NCBI GenBank assembly: GCA_021613535.1
Contig: CP075497.1
Location: 1,860,001-1,924,000, forward strand
Direction of reading: 5' to 3'
DNA length: 64,000 nucleotides
From: Adineta vaga
Lineage: Eukaryota > Animalia > Rotifera
Shown here: piece by piece, positions 1 through 14,519 of the stretch
Layout: each line of letters starts with the position of its first letter
Numbering within the stretch: the stretch's first letter is position 1
Program-made: the position numbers and the translations under genes
Notes under the pieces: generated by a model
Told to the model about the DNA's origin: nothing
What the model saw: only the letters and a program-made list of their open reading frames with translations
Databases searched by the model: none

Positions 1-36
1 ACAGAAAAAAAGTAAATAATTTATTATAAAAATCAT

Positions 37-3000
37 CTATAAACGTTTATCAATAATTTTTAATAATTTATTCGATGTTTTATTGCGAACTAATTGACTA
101 AATTGAATTGATTCGAACTGAACAATTAATTCATCTGAAAGGCTTGTTAATTGATTGTCAAAAAATTTGTCTAAATAATTTCTTAAAATTTTTTCTAAAT
201 TTTCATTTGTAATTGAATCTGGTTTTACATAACGAAATAAAAGAAGTATTTGATTCGTTTTTGTAGATGAAATATAATCAATAATCAATTGCCATTCAAT
301 TAAATCGATTTGTTTCATTGTTTCTTCGATATCCGATTTTGATAGAACATCATTACCAATCATGATTAATCTTTGACTATGAAAAACTTCGATTAAACCA
401 TATTTTGAATGTGAATCTGTTGGAAGAATTCGTCCGAGATCTCCTGAATCAAAACGAAATAATTGATTTCGTTTTCGGATAAGATTTGTAACAATTATTT
501 TTGAATCAATTATTTCAATTTCAACTAATTCTTTTGGATAAAGATAAATTTTTGTTGAAGAATATTTCGATGATTGACATGCATAAACTCCTGTTTCAGC
601 TGAACCATAAAAACCAAGATAAATTGAACAATGAAATATTCGTTGAAAGTATTCCTGTTTAATTTCATCAATTGCTTCACAAGCAAAATAAATTTTTTCA
701 AAATAAATTTCCTTTTTTCCTTGTTTTTCCAAATAAAATGCTAATTGCATTAAACGATACGGTGAACCCATTAAGATAGTTGGTTTAAAATATTCAATGA
801 TCTCCAATACATCTTCGTCGGTTGTATTCGCACTCATAGGAATCGTTGTACAATTTGCCATCGAACAAAAATCATTGAAAATTTCAAACGATCGATAAAT
901 ATTATCCGATTGAAATAAATTTAAACAAACATCTCGATCGGAAATAATATCTTCATCTAACATCATATTAACTAATATTTGTCTTTGACGAAGATTTTCT
1001 TGAATATCTGTCGAGAAAAATAATCGTTTTCCTCCACTTCCACCAGATGATGAAATATAAACGGATTGATTCCATTGATTATCATAGAGTTTCGTTTGAG
1101 TTAATTGTTCATGTAAGTTTTCTTTTATTAAAATACTTCCATCGTTCATAGTATGAATCAATTGTTGATGAACATATGGACGAATGTAATAACCTCCACG
1201 AGATATATTTACAATTTTATTTGGAGCCATTCGAATAACTCCCATATTAAAACAATGTTCATTAAAACATAATAACATTCCACATAAATTCATAGATTTA
1301 TATGGAACATAATCAAAATATTCTTGAACGATCCATTCGTTATGAGTTGAGTCTAATAATTGTTTAGACCATTCATCAATTGTCACATCAATACCTAGAA
1401 AAGTCTTTTCATATAATCACGAAAACATTTTTAGAAAGTAAGTCTTTCAGGTTCCTCGACATACACATTTTTGTTCAAAGAAAGATCAGGTCGAGAAACC
1501 CTTTGAGACTACAGGAAAATATGCGGAATACAATCATTCTTAAGATAAGTTTTTGATAAACTATCATGAACAAGTAACACTCATTCTTCACATTCGCTAA
1601 TCCTTTTCTGAAAGAATGATATCTCATTTTGAATATGAAATAATTCTATTTAAAAAAAAAGAAGTACTTTATATCGATAGAGATCAATTATTCTAAGGTC
1701 ACTTGTTTCTCACAAGGGGCGGATCCCACTGTTCGGCGCCCCGTACCCTTACTGCTCACCTTGAATAGAAGAAGTTTTTTGGCAATAAAAGTTTACTGTA
1801 ATCTAATTGGATTAGACAGACAAACAAACTTTAAGGATTTTTTCTCGAGCTTATATTCGAACTTAATTGTTCTTACCTATGGTAATATTTTCTCCTTTTC
1901 CTGAAGAATTTGGTTTTATACACCAATGTTGTTTGTTGTTAATAATTGAATCTTTGAGATAATTTGGTAATTGTTGAATAACAAACGTTTTTGGTATTAA
2001 TTGTAAGATTTTATCTTGTTGAGTATTTAATAAAGCATAAAGAAATTGTTGATTTGATAAAAGTGAAAATAAACGTTTATCATGTAAAAGAAAAATAGTT
2101 CGTAAATCATTGATATAATTGATTTGATTATTTCGTATAAGAAATTGAAGAATTTCATGAGATAAATCTAGAATTTCATTTTGATGTAATTCAAGAATAA
2201 ATTGTTCAATAGATAAATTCGTTTTTTCATCAATTAATTGATTATTTTCAATTTTTAAATCTTTTGGATTAATAATAAAACATGTTTGAGAAGATTTCTT
2301 ATTCCAATATTGTTCAAATAAATGAATATCATAACCATGTTCTTGAGATTTTAAAATAAACATTCGTTTTGTTAAATCAAATTTTGTTGATTTTATCATT
2401 GTTTCGATCATTCTTGAAGATTTTTGTGAATATCGATTTCGACGATCTGTTGAACATAAAGCGGAGGATAGAAAATATCCATTAAATGGAAATCTTGCAT
2501 TAATTTCACATATCTTTGGTTGAAATGAATATTTTCCATTTATTTTAAATAAATCACCGCGACTAAACATAAGATCAGGTCGATACGAACCAAAATCATA
2601 ATTCGGTCGATAAATATTCAATTCTCTTAAAATCTCATCAATTTTTCTATCAAATTGAAATGTTCGTCGAATTTCTTCACCTAAATTCGTTGATTGATCA
2701 TATTGTTGAACAATTAAAGTTAAAATTTTCCTCAAATTTTCATGTTGATTTTGTAAATAATCATAAAATTCATTAGAAAAAGTTAAATATTCAGGAAATA
2801 ACTTTTCTTTTTCATAAATTGAATGAACATCATATGATAATACTCGATTAAATCGTATTCGAAGTAAATGTCGTCGATGATCAAGAATTTTTGTTCTTCC
2901 ATGAAGATATTTTTGATTATCTAAAATAATCATTGTAAATTTCTTTAATTCCGGTTGAAATCTTTTCACTTGTTGAATAATTAAATTCAATTCTTCATGA

Positions 3001-3563
3001 TTTTCTTTCGAAATTATATCCGATCGATAACGAATTTTATTTGAATCTAATAATATCGGTGCATTGATATGATCAATGTTCGGTGATTTACGAAATTCCA
3101 ATGGAATATCAATTCGAAAATTTTCTTTCGATAATTTCTCTTGAGTTTTTAATGATAAAGATTTTAAAATATCGGATAATTGAATAATTTCTAATTGTCC
3201 ACCACCTAATTGATCTTGTTCTAAAACAAATAATGCCATATATTCAGGTGGATTGATTTCATAGGAACAATCAGTATGAAATGAAAATTCATCATCAGTT
3301 TGAGATCGAGCTAAATGTTTTTTCTCTTCCGATGAATTGCTTTCCATTGGTCGAACATGCCATACAAATGAATTTGGTTCGTCATTATGAGTTAAACATT
3401 CTCCACCAAGTTTTTCAATAATTTCAATGAAGAATTTCTCAATATTAACAGGTAAATGTTCATCAGAGAATTGAATACGAACATAACCATCTTCTATCAG
3501 AGTTTTTTCAATTTCGAATAATCTATTTGGATTATAATCATAACTTTTGAATTGAATATTCAT
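37..3563 (-). CDS. Tri-domain enzyme: TauD/TfdA-like Fe(II)/2OG dioxygenase + ATP-grasp-like ligase + phenylacetate-CoA-ligase-like adenylating domain; exons 3563-1877 and 1394-37, ~1014 aa
   Basis: ORFs 1863..3563 and 37..1386 join in frame across a 482-bp GT-AG intron (1876-1395), reading ...GKGENITIG|IDVTIDEW.... Motifs: FHTDCSY, DNQKYLHGR (HxD...H); RPDLM, CEINARFP, IKPNSSGKG, WIVQEY; SSSGGSGGK, YGSAETG, RFDSGDLG. A pyrimidine tract + AG just before the ATG suggests an additional upstream (UTR or trans-spliced) exon. Confidence 0.85.
1713..1750. mobile_element. Possible solitary DNA-transposon terminus inside the intron of the tri-domain gene
   Basis: GC-rich CAAGGGGCGGATCCC...GGCGCCCC island in AT-rich intron, resembling CAGGGGCGGATCC-type hAT ends; no partner TIR seen. 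Confidence 0.3.
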
Positions 3564-4435
3564 ATTATCTAAAAGAGAAAAAGATTATGAACCATCTGTT
3601 TAAATCAATTGAGAAATAAATAAAATAAAACTATTTCCGAATGACATCTATTTATATCGATATTCTTTATTCAATTATAACCATATGGTAAGTTTCTCGA
3701 TATATCCTCGGATTTTATAATAAAAATCGTCAACTAAACAATATTTGTATAATGACGTAGAGGTACTAATCGTCATATGCCATAGGGTTTCTTCCAATTG
3801 ATTCATGGTAAAGTAGACGTAAATTTCTACTGCCTGATACATATGTCAAATCAATGAAAGGGAGAAAGAAAAAGAACAACACATATGCATATGAGTCATA
3901 GTTTGTCATCAAAAATATTGACGTCACATTACCTCAGTTATGCAAGTAATTTTAGAATCAAGCTCAAAAAATCAGATTTATAAGTAGAAAATTGAATCCA
4001 TAGAGAAGCTTATTTTTTTATCTCAACATAATTTTCATCAAGATTCATTGTTTTTTTTGCATATCAAAATATATTGTATGTAGAGTGAACTCGAGTTTCG
4101 GTGACTATACGAAGTTAATCGAGGCATCATAGATATCGTGTAACATGCATGAAGAAAAGCAAGAACGAGAGTTAAATATAATCATGACGTTGACATGATT
4201 AGACTGCAAGACGTAGAAAAAATGTTTTGATGTATCGATGAAATTTTTTATTACATTTCTTTTAGTTGCCATCAATAGCAACCAAGATCTTCTATGATAA
4301 AAGGTTTCCTACATGATCTCGCTTCATTTTTCTATTCTTTATTTGACATGAATTAAAACTAACAATTGGCCTTATTCATTAATACATTTAATCGTGAGAT
4401 CATAGCAATTCGTTAGGAATATGTCATAGAGATAG

Positions 4436-5662
4436 CAGTGGCGGCGCGAAGAGGTAAAAGCAGAGGGAGGGTATTTTCCAAAATGGGAGAAAATTTGCAA
4501 AATCGTTGGAAATGTAAGAAATTAAACTATTAATATGTAATGGTAAAAAAATTGAAATATACCACTTTGTCTGTTCATCATATATTTAATTAAAACTAAT
4601 TTTTATAAAACAAAAAGCAAACAAAAAAGTTAAATTCGACGACCAGTTTTATTTGTTGACCACTTTTGAAGCAAGTCTTTATTATCAATTTGATCTAAGA
4701 TTGGCATTTCTAATGTACACATGAGCAATAAATGTAAACGATCATCCTTCATTTTCGTTCGTAATCTATTTTTTACTAATTTCATTTTACTGAAAGATCT
4801 CTCTACACTTGCTACACTAACAGGTAATGTCAAAAGATATACATAAGCTTTAGCCAGTAATGGAATAACTAATTTATGTTCATGAATAAATTTACTTGCA
4901 AGATTAACTGTTTCAAATTCACATATTTTCGTTTTGAATAATTGAACTTCATGAAATAATCAATCATAATCATCGATTTGTGTAATTTTACATATATTGC
5001 GAGCATTAGTTTTGGTAAAATTGATTATATGTTTAGGAGATAGTTTAGATAATGATTGAACATTTAAATCAATAGAGGTTAAAATTTGTTTATATCCCAC
5101 AATTAATTGATCCATTACTTGTCGAAATATACTTCTATAATGTTGTGATCTAGATTAGTAAAAAATATGAATAGATAGGTCTTCAGATTTTGGATTTATA
5201 GGAATTGTACTATTAAATAGCAAACAAAATCCTCTTTTGAATAAAAAAATTACCTTGAAAATTGATGAGCTGTTTGTAGATTATCATCAAGCTTTTTTTG
5301 TCAGATGAAGATCAAATCTTTAAACTTTCATCATAAATCGGACGAAATTGAAAGAGCTCAAATAAGTTTTTTTTTATTACCGAGAAAGTTCGGACACATA
5401 TTCTCTAAAATTAGAGAAAATCTCGCTCATATTTTCTCAAACATCAGAGAAATTTTAGAAAATTTCACGTTTAGTTTCTCTTAAATCATAGAAGTTTTAC
5501 ATAGTTTTCTGGAAAAATGGGAGAAAATTACAAATAAATTTTTAAGAAATGGGAGAAAAATTCAAATAATTTTATGGCAAAATGGGAGAAAGTTCTGTTA
5601 AAATGTTCTAAAAGCTGGAGGGAGGTACCTCCCCCCACCTCCCCCCGGTCGCGCCGCCACTG
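4436..5662 (-). mobile_element. Non-autonomous (internally deleted) hAT DNA transposon, 1227 bp
   Basis: Perfect 14-bp TIRs CAGTGGCGGCGCGA (4436-4449 / 5649-5662); identical 8-bp TSD AGAGATAG (4428-4435 and 5663-5670); subterminal AAATGGGAGA repeats near both ends; hAT dimerisation-domain remnant inside. Confidence 0.95.
4630..5150 (-). pseudogene. hAT transposase C-terminal remnant (dimerisation domain)
   Basis: LLTLPVSVASVERSFSKMKLVKNRLRTKM is the hAT C-terminal motif; upstream frame has an in-frame TGA (QIDDYD*LFHE, ~4960); catalytic core missing. Confidence 0.85.
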
Positions 5663-5788: not shown

Positions 5789-6799
5789 TTACATAGTAAG
5801 GAAAAGATAGAAAATATACAAAATAAAATATCTACATATATTCAAAAACGAATTATGAGTAGAAAAATGAAGAATATTGTTAGTAATCGATGATGATGAT
5901 GATGATGTCGAAGGAATATAAGTACATTGCGTACAATTGACTTCAGCTAAAAATCTTATAAGTGATTCAGTAAAGAACTGTGGATCTTGTAGAAATGCAA
6001 AATGACTTGTTCTTGGTAAAATCAATTCACCTGCTTGTGTTATCCATGTTGTCATTTTGTCAGGTTGTTCTCGTAAGATGGCTTCTTCATGATCACCATC
6101 AACAATCCAAATAGGTAAATTTTTATCGATTTTTTCGAAATCTTGTTGAGCCCAATTTGGAAGTGTAGCCCACATTGTCGTTAAATAACTGTATAAATTC
6201 GAATAATTCTTCGCTGGATTTATTGTTTCATATTCAGTTTCAGATCGTTGAAGAAATGTTGTAAAAACAGTCGAATTTGAAATATCCATTACTCCCGAAG
6301 GAATATAATTAGCAGCAAATGCATATAATGAACTTAATCTATTCGGATATTTCATTGCTACATTGAGACCAATAATTGCACCATCACTCCATCCAATTAG
6401 ATGTACTTTTTGAATACCAAGATGATCTAATAATCCAATAACATCCGATGCCATCAGATCATATGTAATACCGTTCGATGTTACTGTACTTCTACCTTGT
6501 CCTCGAGAATCCATAAGTATACATCGAAAAGATGACTGAAGTTTTTCAACTTGTAAACCCCAGTAAGCACTTTGAGCAAAACCACCATGAACGAAAAGAA
6601 GAGGAGCACCGTCCGAAGGACCATATGTAGTATACCAAATGGAAACATTATTAATTTGCACAGATGAACCCAATTGAGGTGAGGGTAATTGTGGCGTTGA
6701 TGGTAATCGTAACCATGGATAAATTGAATTCAATACGGTAGAATTTTCAGTTGTAATATAAGAAAAAAAGCATACAAAGAAGAGATGTATGATATGCAT
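5789..6799 (-). CDS. Secreted alpha/beta-hydrolase (bacterial/fungal-like), intronless, possible GPI or TM tail
   Basis: Hydrophobic N-terminus; VHGG, MDSRGQGRS, GWSDG nucleophile elbow, DGDHEE, SHFAF; Ser-rich linker then hydrophobic C-terminus. Confidence 0.85.
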   Translation of the reverse strand: MHIIHLFFVCFFSYITTENSTVLNSIYPWLRLPSTPQLPSPQLGSSVQINNVSIWYTTYGPSDGAPLLFVHGGFAQSAYWGLQVEKLQSSFRCILMDSRGQGRSTVTSNGITYDLMASDVIGLLDHLGIQKVHLIGWSDGAIIGLNVAMKYPNRLSSLYAFAANYIPSGVMDISNSTVFTTFLQRSETEYETINPAKNYSNLYSYLTTMWATLPNWAQQDFEKIDKNLPIWIVDGDHEEAILREQPDKMTTWITQAGELILPRTSHFAFLQDPQFFTESLIRFLAEVNCTQCTYIPSTSSSSSSITNNILHFSTHNSFLNICRYFILYIFYLFLTM

Positions 6800-11050: not shown

Positions 11051-12997
11051 ATGGAACAAAAATCAAATCGTGTACAACAGTTCATACAAAGTCTACGAGA
11101 AAGTAAAAGACCTATTCATCTTTTTCGTTAAATATTCATTTAAAATAGAACATCACAATCATCAACCTCCACAATGTGAATTTTCAACAGGTAAGAATTT
11201 CTTTGTTTTATTAAATAAATAAATAAATGAAGATTTTATTTTAAGATAAAAAATGGCTTGATATTCAGTTTGATTCTCATGAACGAATAGTAAAGCCTAA
11301 TGATCTTCTACATGATATGAAAGACCCACCGGGTTCAATCAATCGAAGAATATTAAACAAAATTCAAGGATCTTTAATTGGAATAGCTTTAGGCGATGCT
11401 TTAGGAGCGCACGTAGAATTTCGTCCTCGTCAATATTTAGTGGAAAATCCAGTTAAAGATCTCGTAGGAGGTGGCACTTGGGGTCTTAAAAAAGGACAGG
11501 TATTGTACTACGACAAGATAAAAAGCCTCAGCAGTACATTCATGTTTGCCTTTTTCTAATCAGACAAACAATTGTATGCTATAAAATATAAAAATAAGTC
11601 ATGTCTTTTTCTAAGTCATACATTCAGCAGTAGTATGACGTCACTTGAAAATTTGATATCTTCGAAAGTCATGCCGAGTTATACTACACTAAACAAATAT
11701 TAAATAGCAAAGAAATCGACTTCTGAAAATATGTTTTGAGTTTCAATGACAAATGATTTATAAGAATATTTTCGAAATACTTAAAAAAGAATCACGATAT
11801 TCCATCGCATAGGAATGACTGAGTGTGTAAATAGTTTCGCTCGAGATTAAAGAATTTATATTTTAGTTTACTGATGATACTTCGATGACACTATGCTTGG
11901 CTATATCATTAATCACTCGTCGTGGTTTTGTTCCATATGATCAATTAGTTCGATATAAATGGTGGTATCAAAATGGATATATGTCATCAACTGGACAATG
12001 TTTTGATATAGGTGCAGGAACTCGACAATCCCTTGAAGTATTTATTAATCGTCAACGTAAATGGGAAAAAAGATATAGGACCCGTGTTTATAGCTTGGAT
12101 CGACTCTCAGATGATGATTATCTTCAAAGATTCAAGGTCTATTGTAGTAGAAATATTGGAGCTGGTAATGGAGCTCTAATGAGAGTAGCACCAGTTTCAC
12201 TTTTTTTTTATAAGTTTCCAAACATAGCCATTGAATATTCAGGTATTAGTGGACAGATTACTCATGGAGATAAGGAAGCTTATGATGCTTGTCGGTACTA
12301 TGGAGCTTTGATATGTGCTGTTATGAATGGTGTTGAAAAAGCACAACTTCTTGACAACAATTTTTATCAAAGTCAGAGAATTTTCGATGATAATCCACTT
12401 TGTGATGAAATTAGGATGGTTGCTGAAGGATCTTACAAGAAGAAAGGTGGTTATGATGAAGGAATAAGAGGAAAAGGTTATATAGTTTATGCTCTTGAGG
12501 CTGCTTTATGGGCATTTTGGTCTGATAATGACTGTTTTGAAAAAGGTGTACTAGCTGCTATCAATTTAGGTGATGATACTGATACGACAGCTGCTATTTA
12601 TGGTCAATTAGCTGGTGCATACTACGGATATGATCGATTACCTCAGAATTGGGTTAAAGAACTGTATGCAAAAGATTTTATATTAAACATCAGTAAATGG
12701 CTAGCATATGAAGGCGAAAAATGGAAAGAATCAGACATCACACCACCAACACATCATCCATCAAAATATTCATCTTCTTGTGATAATCTTACAGTCGATG
12801 TATTAACTAGAGATTATTCTAGAGATCTATCGGCTCCTGTTTCTGAACCATCATCACCAAAGAACAAATCTTTTTGGAATAGATTCTTGCACCCTTTTCG
12901 CGGTAAGAAACAATCATCACATTCGCTTACGAAAATGTCTTATACACCTCATCCTCCAAGAAAACCAAGACAACGTCGTCTTTCAGATCCAAAATAA
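11051..12997 (+). CDS. ADP-ribosylglycohydrolase (DraG/ARH family), 4 exons
   Basis: GIALGDALG, GQ|FTDDTSM joined across a 367-bp intron (11500-11866), GNGALMR, ITHG, GDDTDTTAAIYGQLAGA; two short 5' introns give an in-frame start at 11051 (start less certain). Confidence 0.92.
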
Positions 12998-13547
12998 ACA
13001 TTCTTTCGAAATAATTCAATCGTACGAGATAACTTTGACTTTAAAGATTAATTTTATTTGCATTTAGAAAAAAAACGAATTTTTTCGTAGTTTTTTTAAA
13101 CATTCGTTGATGTATATGATTTGAATGAGGAAACAAAAATAGTATATAAAATTCAACAAATATATGAGATACAATTCAAATGAAAATCTGTCTTTCATGC
13201 TAAATACATAGTTACAATCTTCTATTTGGTAAACGAATAAATATACTTATCGACATGTCATGGTATACCATACGGTTTATCATCAGTGTTGATAAACTAT
13301 AAAGAGCCTGTTTCTGCGAAACATGAAACTAAATATTCTCGGAATTGATTCATCGAGTTTCAATGAGTAAATATTGACAAAGTATGACAACCATATTTTA
13401 CTTTTTTTTCTACCTACTTTTTCATGGAAAAGTATAATCGAACATTGTCTTTCATTGCTCAATGTAATTCATGAATGGTGACATCTGTAACTCATTCTAC
13501 GTAATGGTTAAATATTTCCTTCATTTCAGATATTGAGAAAGATCACG

Positions 13548-14519
13548 ATGGCATCGACTAGTAAATCTGCGAATGTAGATGTAAATCAAACAATGGATAC
13601 TGAAATGAAATCATTAATTAATCAAGCAGCTGAGTTAATAATTAGTTGTGAAGCGATTTTATTCACAAGTGGTGCTGGCATGGGTGTCAGTAGTGGACTT
13701 GGAACATTCCGAGGTATTGCAGCTGGTGTTTGGCCACCTCTATTGAAACATAAAGATTTAGATTTTACTGATATGAGTAATCCACAATGGTTCGAAAAAG
13801 CACAAGGAAATAGTGAAGAACATAATACAGCAAATTTCGGTTATGCATTTTGGGCATATCGATATAATGCTTACACATCATCAGCTCCACATATTGGTTA
13901 TGAAATTGCAAAACAATGGAGTCGTTTCAATCATGTTAAGTATTCATTTAGTTTTACAAGCAATATTGATGGTCATTGGATAAAATCAGGTTGGGATGAA
14001 TCATCGATTTTAGAATGTCATGGATCAATTCATTATATGCAATGTATTCAACCATGTCGTAACAAAATATGGGAAACAAATAGTTCATTAAATCTTCTAA
14101 TTGATCCAAAAACTGATTGCGTCATTGATAATTTACCAAAATGTCTTTATTGTAAAAGATTAGCAAGACCGAATGTCTTAATGTTTGGTGATGGAAATTA
14201 TTTAGGACGAAGAAAGAATGAACAAGTATTAAATTTTTCTAACTTTCAATCAAATATAGAAAAAATGAAAGGAAGATTATTAATTATTGAATTAGGTGCT
14301 GGTACAGCTGTTCCAACAGTTCGAATAGAAAGTGAAAAAAGATTTGCAGATAACCGATGGAATGCTGATTTTATTCGTATTAATCCATTGAAAGAAGATG
14401 CAATAGTTAGTCCTTATTGGAGAAATAAAGGACAAGGACAAATATTAGAATTGACTCTTGATGCATTGACAGCTTTAACATTAATTAACGAAGTTATTAA
14501 AGAGAAAATGAAATCATAA
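13548..14519 (+). CDS. Sir2-family NAD-dependent deacylase, bacterial-type, intronless
   Basis: GAGMGVSSGLGTFRG, TSNIDGH, ECHGS (catalytic His), CxxxC...CxxC Zn site, RPNVLMFGD, IELGAGTAVPTVR, IRINP. Confidence 0.92.
   Translation: MASTSKSANVDVNQTMDTEMKSLINQAAELIISCEAILFTSGAGMGVSSGLGTFRGIAAGVWPPLLKHKDLDFTDMSNPQWFEKAQGNSEEHNTANFGYAFWAYRYNAYTSSAPHIGYEIAKQWSRFNHVKYSFSFTSNIDGHWIKSGWDESSILECHGSIHYMQCIQPCRNKIWETNSSLNLLIDPKTDCVIDNLPKCLYCKRLARPNVLMFGDGNYLGRRKNEQVLNFSNFQSNIEKMKGRLLIIELGAGTAVPTVRIESEKRFADNRWNADFIRINPLKEDAIVSPYWRNKGQGQILELTLDALTALTLINEVIKEKMKS

Follow-up and report, generated by a model that had tools for sequence, protein, structure and literature searches.

A spliced single-protein gene of the bdelloid rotifer Adineta vaga probably encodes an E-64-type cysteine-protease inhibitor synthase

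Introduction

E-64 and its analogues are standard research tools and drug leads, yet their biosynthesis was solved only in 2025, in fungi (Liu et al., Nat Chem Biol 2025, PMC12568646). In Aspergillus flavus, cp1A, cp1B and cp1D form the minimal cassette: Cp1A epoxidises fumarate, Cp1B (structure PDB 9CJN) ligates an L-amino acid, and Cp1D adds an amine. The same work describes the cp2 and tcp clusters and the cyanobacterial mfa cluster, and it shows that MfaA, although only 30% identical to Cp1A, is a trans-epoxysuccinate synthase too. It also shows that the PLP decarboxylase is dispensable, that malyl and fumaryl analogues are made when Cp1A is absent, and that homologues of Cp1B and Cp1D also occur in clusters unrelated to E-64. 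Other related enzymes are glutathione and homoglutathione synthetases, the glutathionylspermidine synthetase-like ligases YgiC, YjfC and GspS, and the PaaK family of ANL enzymes. Horizontally acquired biosynthetic genes are known from bdelloid rotifers (Nowell et al., Nat Commun 2024, PMC11258130), but we found no paper linking rotifers to the E-64 pathway, and no E-64-like compound is known from them.

Here we analyzed a 64,000-nucleotide stretch of Adineta vaga DNA (GCA_021613535.1, contig CP075497.1, positions 1,860,001 to 1,924,000), hereafter the window, in which an earlier note made from the sequence alone had proposed that two open reading frames form one gene with a TauD oxygenase, an ATP-grasp ligase and an adenylate-forming ligase. 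Searches were made exon by exon or with the public 1014-aa protein I4U23_027815, which is annotated as a hypothetical protein and equals both exon translations piece by piece.

Results

The two reading frames are one spliced gene

The proposed gene structure was confirmed, and its features are collected in Table 1. Splicing is shown by contigs and not only by prediction, because a joint that skips 482 bases (CT..AC) was found in two transcript-like runs of one study; in run X2 the joint has 167 nt on each side, and in run X1 it has 24 nt on the shorter side. Neither run is on record as RNA, and we call them transcript-like because they have no depth in the intron or upstream of about 3640, while the DNA-like run X7 covers the whole stretch. 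The split codon G|GT encodes Gly563. An intron sits at the same codon and phase in A. ricciae (48 bp) and R. sordida (63 bp), and the repeat inside the A. vaga intron has at least 27 other copies in the genome.

Table 1. Features of the gene in window coordinates
Feature	Coordinates	Strand	Residues	Details
Exon 1	1877..3563	-	codons 1-562 plus the first base of codon 563	ATG at 3563
Domain A, TauD/TfdA-type Fe(II)/2-oxoglutarate oxygenase, Cp1A-like	2829..3563	-	1-245	HTD at 96, LHGR at 220; iron-binding triad His96, Asp98, His221; Arg231 and Arg235 invariant
Domain B, N-terminal part, Cp1B-like ATP-grasp (Pfam PF28486 AnkG_N)	1877..2828	-	246-562	RPD at 328, EINAR at 353, KPNSSGKG at 550; Arg328, Asp330, Glu353 and Asn355 correspond to Cp1B R139, D141, E163 and N165
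Intron	1395..1876	-		482 bp, GT..AG, phase 1, inside the ATP-grasp domain; dispersed repeat at about 1549-1663
Exon 2	40..1394	-
Domain B, C-terminal part	1102..1394	-	563-660
Domain D, PaaK-type ANL adenylate-forming domain, Cp1D-like	40..1101	-	661-1014	SSSGGSGGK at 677 (P-loop 677-685, window 1027-1053), YGSAE at 825, SGDLG at 879, invariant Lys1005 (window 67-69)
Stop codon	37..39	-		TAG

Each domain resembles a member of the E-64 cassette

The oxygenase domain scores 35.1 bits against the Pfam TauD (PF02668) cut-off of 27, and 38.5 bits were obtained for an orthologue. Its triad and both arginines are invariant in 34 homologues. The nearest solved structures to its profile are asparagine oxygenase, clavaminate synthase and glutarate hydroxylase. 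A profile search with this domain returned no Aspergillus protein within its candidate cut-off, and a scan of 401 Cyanobacteriota genomes gave only two hits at E 1e-12 or better, one of which is not an mfa cluster; similarity to the printed Cp1A and MfaA sequences, including the long conserved motifs around the HxD and the distal His, was therefore seen only by eye.

The central domain gave only a weak DUF5905 hit in the Pfam library searched, which lacks PF28486, but its profile hits Cp1B at E 8e-79 and the single sequence hits it at 1.4e-15, with the RPD and EIN residues and the Cp1B C terminus aligned. The AF2 model of residues 245-665 has a pLDDT of 93.7, and its top Foldseek hit is again Cp1B (E 4e-21, TM 0.74), followed by glutathione synthetases, YjfC/YgiC and GspS. 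The four Cp1B residues whose alanine substitution abolished or strongly reduced activity (PMC12568646) are all conserved in the rotifer protein; in 40 sequences the R, D and E are invariant and the N is nearly invariant.

The C-terminal domain scores 18 bits, below the Pfam AMP-binding (PF00501) cut-off of 29.9. Nevertheless, the NCBIfam DVU_1553-family AMP-dependent ligase model hits it at 2.6e-12, its profile matches PaaK-family structures at 5e-25, and its AF2 model (pLDDT 87.8) finds PaaK1 and BT_0428 in Foldseek at E about 1e-21 with TM up to 0.76, as well as NatL2, AjiA1 and ClxA, which are probably CoA-independent ligases. It is a divergent member of the PaaK branch, inferred to work like an ANL enzyme. 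The P-loop, YGSAE, GD motif and terminal Lys (K366 of alignment A4) are conserved, although the A8 "GR" hinge motif of the bacterial homologues reads "SQ" in the rotifers. No IucA/IucC domain was found in the Pfam or NCBIfam scans.

The trio recurs in fungi and bacteria

A Trichoderma protein matches Cp1B at E 8e-118, and we take it for an orthologue of the tcp cluster. In its locus the rotifer TauD, ATP-grasp and ANL domains match the three adjacent coding regions at E 5e-33 (over 250 aa), 7e-22 and 2e-16 (71 bits), although the identities are low (31%, 26% and 22%), and identity to Cp1B in the structural alignment is 23%. The stand-alone ATP-grasp homologue of Trichoderma virens does not sit in a cassette. 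Among 40 bacterial loci found with the ATP-grasp domain, the TauD gene is adjacent in 31, the ANL gene in 22 and both in about 21, and the order A-B-D occurs in Vibrio and in some Obscuribacterales. Independent fusions B-A, B-D and B-A-D exist. The cassette extends well beyond the fungi and cyanobacteria named in PMC12568646, to Obscuribacterales, Vibrio and Midichloriaceae.

The gene is conserved and under purifying selection in bdelloids

The three-domain protein is conserved across bdelloid rotifers, which carry the parts fused in the order A-B-D; full-length orthologues and paralogues occur in Adineta and Rotaria, whereas the Didymodactylos model is A-B only. The intron position is the same, and the same PLC gene lies next door, in Adineta and Rotaria. 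Between A. vaga and A. ricciae, dN/dS is 0.16-0.18 in both exons, and 26 of 36 strain variants fall at third codon positions (p = 2e-6). Bdelloids are monophyletic in all three domain trees, but these are quick searches rooted at the midpoint, in which the bdelloid sequences sit on long stems outside the fungal clade, and the donor of the transfer could not be resolved. Other apparent animal homologues are doubtful: a firefly protein nests inside Coxiellaceae on a short branch and is probably symbiont DNA with two genes merged into one model, and a partial Brachionus protein is nearest to Melainabacteria-type sequences, not to bdelloids.

Discussion

According to the above analysis, the locus is one expressed, spliced gene that descends from a horizontally acquired microbial three-gene cassette, now fused into one polypeptide. 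By homology to Cp1A, Cp1B and Cp1D, we infer that the N-terminal oxygenase turns fumarate into trans-epoxysuccinate, the electrophilic warhead; that the ATP-grasp ligase activates one carboxylate of the warhead as an acyl-phosphate (ATP to ADP) and joins it to an L-amino acid; and that the PaaK-type amide-bond synthetase adenylates the amino-acid carboxylate (ATP to AMP) and joins it to an amine such as agmatine, putrescine or cadaverine, with no carrier protein or CoA involved. The product would be an E-64-like epoxysuccinyl pseudotripeptide, a covalent inhibitor of papain-family cysteine proteases, most plausibly used in defence against pathogens or predators or to restrain cathepsins. We consider this reading more likely than not, although every substrate, the epoxide chemistry, the product and its biological role are inferred from homology only.

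The earlier note was right that this is one spliced gene of foreign origin that has since gained an intron, that its three catalytic domains are intact and of the named classes, that amide bonds would be formed without a carrier protein, that it is probably a defence-type metabolite enzyme, and that no characterised enzyme has this fused architecture. However, its proposal of a horizontally assembled enzyme making a hydroxylated acyl-peptide needs revision, because the trio was not assembled domain by domain in the animal but is a pre-existing cassette that became fused, and because the three separate enzymes have been characterised as the E-64 pathway, so that the likely first step is epoxidation of fumarate. 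Nothing supports its siderophore-like reading.

The main alternative, which we regard as possible but unlikely, keeps the same logic of acid, amino acid and amine but gives the oxygenase another small acid, for example a C4 or C5 dicarboxylate or an amino acid, to hydroxylate or desaturate, so that the product would be a non-epoxide pseudopeptide serving as an osmolyte, signal, metal ligand or other inhibitor. Fe/2OG enzymes change reaction type and substrate easily, so epoxidation of fumarate is not demonstrated; identity to the fungal oxygenase is low, the nearest solved structures are hydroxylases, including the glutarate 2-hydroxylase CsiD/GlaH, which acts on a dicarboxylate, no member of the nearer bacterial groups has been characterised, and the occurrence of Cp1B and Cp1D homologues outside E-64 clusters fits the same view. 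No PLP decarboxylase or exporter lies nearby. On the other side, all three partners recur together in fungi, bacteria and rotifers, and Cp1A and MfaA both make trans-epoxysuccinate despite their divergence and share their long motifs with the rotifer domain.

It is very unlikely that the gene is a decaying or functionless relic that is transcribed without making a useful product. Many horizontally acquired genes in bdelloids are of unknown use, and one stand-alone oxygenase paralogue carries an in-frame TGA, but here the frame is open for 1014 codons with all catalytic residues intact, the transcript is spliced, and selection acts on both exons. Contaminant microbial DNA, or two genes wrongly joined, is hardly tenable and in our view already refuted. 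The closest non-rotifer relatives are indeed bacterial and fungal, and gene models cut at about 575 aa, as well as separate pieces of about 450 aa, exist for relatives on metagenome contigs; however, the gene has a spliceosomal intron that is removed in transcript-like contigs, lies on a 13.9-Mb chromosome among animal genes (a PLC, a Cys-loop receptor and a hAT remnant), has a GC content of 28%, like the rest of the window, and shows conserved synteny and intron position in other bdelloids, and a relative carries an uninterrupted 1016-codon ORF.

It seems about as likely as not that bdelloid rotifers are the first animals found to encode a complete pathway to such an inhibitor, by a single trifunctional enzyme that arose by fusion before the bdelloid radiation, with the compound serving as chemical defence or as a control on cathepsins. 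If so, this would be a new source of such inhibitors, a rare case of an animal making a warhead-bearing natural product with a horizontally acquired enzyme, and a ready-made catalyst for three consecutive steps, possibly with substrate channelling. It gives a concrete candidate for chemical defence or for protease control, for example during desiccation and recovery. The fusions found here also give independent evidence that the three enzyme families work together across fungi, bacteria and rotifers.

Like the horizontally acquired biosynthetic genes described by Nowell et al. (PMC11258130), this is a foreign biosynthetic gene domesticated with an intron and conserved across bdelloids, but the enzyme is NRPS-independent, and a search of the text of that paper for TauD, ATP-grasp, phenylacetate, cysteine protease and protease inhibitor found none of them. 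The central domain has the fold of the glutathione synthetase-like ligases (Foldseek E 1e-16 to 1e-11), including the acyl-phosphate residues and the KP..G.G loop, while its sequence similarity to them is marginal (best profile hit 1.6e-8) and it belongs to a separate Pfam family. The C-terminal domain has the compact two-lobed fold, P-loop and C-terminal catalytic Lys of PaaK1, NatL2, AjiA1 and ClxA, but it is much closer to the Cp1D/TcpD-type gene than to any PaaK (24 bits) and is predicted to use an amine, not CoA, as acceptor. With the E-64 cassette the rotifer gene shares the three enzyme families, homologous domain for domain, the absence of a carrier protein and the Cp1B catalytic residues, and the TauD triad and ANL core motifs are conserved within the rotifer-bacterial family, whereas Cp1A and Cp1D themselves were compared only by eye; it differs from that cassette in that the three parts form one polypeptide in an animal genome, with an intron inside the ATP-grasp domain.

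Gene structure and splicing

The Adineta vaga stretch (C6:1,860,001-1,924,000 of a 100.8-Mb, six-contig genome) is AT-rich throughout, with a GC content of 26-33%. On the minus strand, two ORFs lie one after the other, and reading of the sequence between them revealed a GT donor directly after base 1877 and an AG acceptor directly before base 1394, which define a 482-bp intron in phase 1. The split codon G|GT encodes glycine, and the spliced gene contains 562 + 1 + 451 = 1014 codons. The coordinates of the gene and of the other features described here are collected in the table.

Features of the three-domain gene, its surroundings and two oxygenase paralogues
Feature	Position	Strand	Description
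First ORF	3563-1863	-	starts at the ATG
Second ORF	1386-37	-	
Intron	1395-1876	-	482 bp, phase 1
Dispersed repeat in the intron	about 1549-1663		at least 27 other copies on all six chromosomes
Point of contig divergence	3563-3564		5' end of the gene
Short ORF	4630-4833	-	resembles, by eye, the C-terminal dimerisation domain of hAT transposases
Alpha/beta-hydrolase gene	5789-6799		
ADP-ribosylglycohydrolase and SIR2-family ORFs	11885-14519	+	in tandem
Stand-alone oxygenase paralogue L002	contig C3:17044929-17045678		
Stand-alone oxygenase paralogue L003	contig C6:10945253-10945975		

By aligning sequencing runs to positions 1-4200, we found that contigs of two runs from one study (X1 and X2) carry a joint that skips exactly 482 bases, with CT..AC ends on the plus strand, and in X2 this joint is flanked by 167 nt on each side. 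These two runs show no depth in the intron or upstream of about 3640, whereas the DNA-like run X7 covers everything. None of the runs is recorded as RNA, so X1 and X2 are called transcript-like on the basis of this pattern, and as they are contigs, they show that the spliced form exists but not how strongly it is expressed. It is worth noting that one X1 contig follows the gene up to the A of the ATG and then continues for at least 255 nt of sequence unlike the genome; no AG acceptor sits at that point, and the contig could reflect a diverged allele, an upstream exon or an assembly join. A protein search returned the 1014-aa "hypothetical protein I4U23_027815 [Adineta vaga]" (P0164 below), encoded on a 13.9-Mb contig, which is identical piece by piece to the translations of both exons, with Gly at residue 563. 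The spliced model is already present in the public annotation, without a function, and it served as our full-length reference.

Predicted folds and conserved residues of the three domains

The N-terminal domain (residues 1 to 245) scores above the Pfam threshold for TauD. In an alignment of 34 homologues, His96, Asp98, His221, Arg231 and Arg235 are invariant, and the nearest solved relatives of the family profile are asparagine oxygenase, clavaminate synthase and glutarate 2-hydroxylase. The same genome holds two stand-alone paralogues of this domain, which are 47% and 39-42% identical to it; one has an in-frame TGA and the other is an open 260-aa frame, and no ATP-grasp or ANL coding sequence lies within 1.5 kb of either.

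The central domain (residues 246 to 660) has no match in the Pfam copy searched, while the precomputed annotation and the Atlas name it PF28486, "AnkG_N." A profile built from 40 homologues hits one solved structure far above all others, namely ligase Cp1B (PDB 9cjn), at an E value of 8e-79, followed by glutathione synthetases at about 1e-8, and the single rotifer sequence hits 9cjn at 1.4e-15. The AlphaFold2 model of P0164 residues 245 to 665 has a mean pLDDT of 93.7, and its best Foldseek match is again 9cjn (E value of 4e-21, TM score of 0.74), followed by yeast, human and plant glutathione synthetases, Escherichia coli YjfC and YgiC, and glutathionylspermidine synthetase. The domain is thus an ATP-grasp ligase of the glutathione-synthetase type, as the earlier note had supposed, and specifically a Cp1B homologue.

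The C-terminal domain (residues 661 to 1014) is below the Pfam cut-off for AMP-binding but matches the NCBIfam DVU_1553-family AMP-dependent ligase at 2.6e-12, and a profile of 28 homologues hits PaaK-family structures at 5e-25. Its AlphaFold2 model (pLDDT of 87.8) matches PaaK1 and BT_0428 at E values of about 1e-21, with TM scores up to 0.76, and also NatL2, AjiA1 and ClxA. The P-loop (SSSGGSGGK, 677 to 685), YGSAE, the GD motif and an invariant C-terminal lysine (Lys1005) are conserved.

The three domains correspond to the genes of an E-64-type cluster

Cp1B is the ATP-grasp enzyme of the E-64 pathway (Liu et al., Nat Chem Biol 2025, PMC12568646). According to that report, the Fe(II)/2-oxoglutarate oxygenase Cp1A epoxidises fumarate to (2S,3S)-trans-epoxysuccinate, Cp1B ligates the epoxysuccinate to a hydrophobic L-amino acid with formation of ADP, and Cp1D, an ANL-family amide-bond synthetase, adenylates the product and couples it to putrescine, cadaverine or agmatine. 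These three genes form the minimal cassette, and the PLP decarboxylase Cp1C is dispensable. Alanine substitution of R139, D141, E163 or N165 in Cp1B abolishes or strongly reduces activity, and these residues align with R328, D330, E353 and N355 of the rotifer protein. The cassette is reported from more than 100 fungal species and from cyanobacteria, and the cyanobacterial MfaA, although only 30% identical to Cp1A, is also an epoxysuccinate synthase.

The other two rotifer domains were compared with a fungal cluster rather than with Cp1A, Cp1D or MfaA themselves. The Trichoderma austrokoningii protein P0188 is a merged gene model, of which the N-terminal part matches Cp1B at an E value of 8e-118 and the C-terminal part is a TauD domain, and we take it for an orthologue of the tcp cluster listed in the supplement of PMC12568646. 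In its locus (L046), the next gene encodes a 461-aa protein with no Pfam hit. When the three rotifer domains were searched against L046 with tblastn, the TauD domain matched with 31% identity over 250 aa (E value of 5e-33), the ATP-grasp domain matched at 7e-22, and the ANL domain matched the neighbouring gene with 71 bits (E value of 2e-16), far better than it matches any PaaK structure (24 bits). All three rotifer domains therefore correspond one-to-one to the three genes of an E-64-type cluster.

Recurrence of the cassette in other organisms

A scan of bacterial genomes with the ATP-grasp profile gave 40 loci, and searching of their flanks found the oxygenase gene adjacent in 31, the ANL gene adjacent in 22, and both in about 21. 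Cassettes with the oxygenase (A), ATP-grasp (B) and ANL (D) genes occur in Obscuribacterales, Vibrio caribbeanicus and V. ostreicida, Midichloriaceae and a Myxococcota MAG, while the Coxiellaceae and Patescibacteria loci show the oxygenase and ATP-grasp only. Many of the hosts are intracellular. The gene orders include B-D-A and also A-B-D, which is the order of the rotifer domains.

Several fusions arose independently, including B-D in Midichloriaceae (843 aa), B-A in Orbilia, Peziza and metagenomes, and B-A-D in P0012, a 1145-aa protein from an ENA metagenome contig of unknown organism, whose ANL part is 28% identical to that of the rotifer. These fusions are independent evidence that the three enzymes act together. 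A protein of the firefly Abscondita terminalis (P0211, 693 aa) with the oxygenase and ATP-grasp domains nests inside Coxiellaceae/Aquirickettsiella on a short branch in two trees, and it is probably symbiont DNA in the insect assembly, with two genes merged into one model.

Evolutionary history in rotifers

Full-length three-domain proteins of 1005 to 1036 aa occur in Adineta ricciae, Rotaria sordida, R. socialis and two further Rotaria species, with several paralogues in Rotaria, while A. steineri has only partial models (912 and 729 aa) and Didymodactylos has an A-B model. In addition, a relative 55% identical carries the same three domains in one uninterrupted 1016-codon ORF on a 3.15-kb contig. 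In quick maximum-likelihood trees of each domain, built without an outgroup, the bdelloids form one clade (SH-aLRT of 100, 99 and 95) on a long stem, which lies among bacterial and metagenomic sequences and is apart from the fungal clade in the ATP-grasp and TauD trees (no fungal row is in the ANL tree); the donor is not resolved. A partial record of the monogonont rotifer Brachionus calyciflorus (P0051, 329 aa) holds an ATP-grasp homologue that is nearest to Melainabacteria-type sequences (38% identity) and not to the bdelloid clade; it is either contamination or a separate acquisition.

In A. ricciae and R. sordida, the gene has an intron at the same codon and phase but of only 48 and 63 bp, respectively; the A. 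vaga intron is larger and includes the dispersed repeat. The convergent downstream neighbour is the same phospholipase C (PLC) gene in all three species. The dN/dS values between A. vaga and A. ricciae are 0.18 for exon 1 and 0.16 for exon 2, and of the 36 strain variants listed from the aligned runs, 26 fall at third codon positions (P = 2e-6). The flanking genes are ordinary animal genes, namely, the PLC, a Cys-loop receptor fragment and a hAT remnant, the last being probably a transposon remnant between this gene and the alpha/beta-hydrolase gene. Together, these observations point to a single ancient acquisition, a fusion, an intron gain and then vertical inheritance under purifying selection, and contamination and a mis-joined model are excluded.

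Inferred function and comparison with the E-64 pathway

According to the above-described analysis, the most likely function of the protein is that of a trifunctional synthase for an E-64-like epoxysuccinyl-amino acid-amine inhibitor of papain-family cysteine proteases, which would run in the order oxygenase, ATP-grasp, ANL without a carrier protein. The gene structure, splicing, folds, catalytic residues, domain-by-domain homology, recurrence of the cassette and selection are supported directly by our data, whereas the substrates, the epoxide and the product are inferred. The main alternative is that the same ligation logic operates with a different acid or oxidation, because the identities to the fungal enzymes are only 22-31%, no member of the nearer bacterial groups has been studied, and Fe/2OG enzymes shift chemistry easily. 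We consider the E-64-like reading somewhat more likely than not, and the alternative unlikely but still possible.

Full-text searches found no paper linking rotifers to epoxysuccinyl compounds or to this enzyme trio, and the study of horizontally acquired biosynthetic genes in bdelloids (Nowell et al., Nat Commun 2024, PMC11258130) contains none of the terms we searched for this enzyme type. PMC12568646 does not mention fusions, rotifers or animals, and the range of bacterial loci found here is wider than the fungi and cyanobacteria named in it. The enzyme families and the pathway have been known since 2025, while the single-polypeptide architecture, the animal host, the conserved intron and the breadth of the cassette in bacteria are new here.
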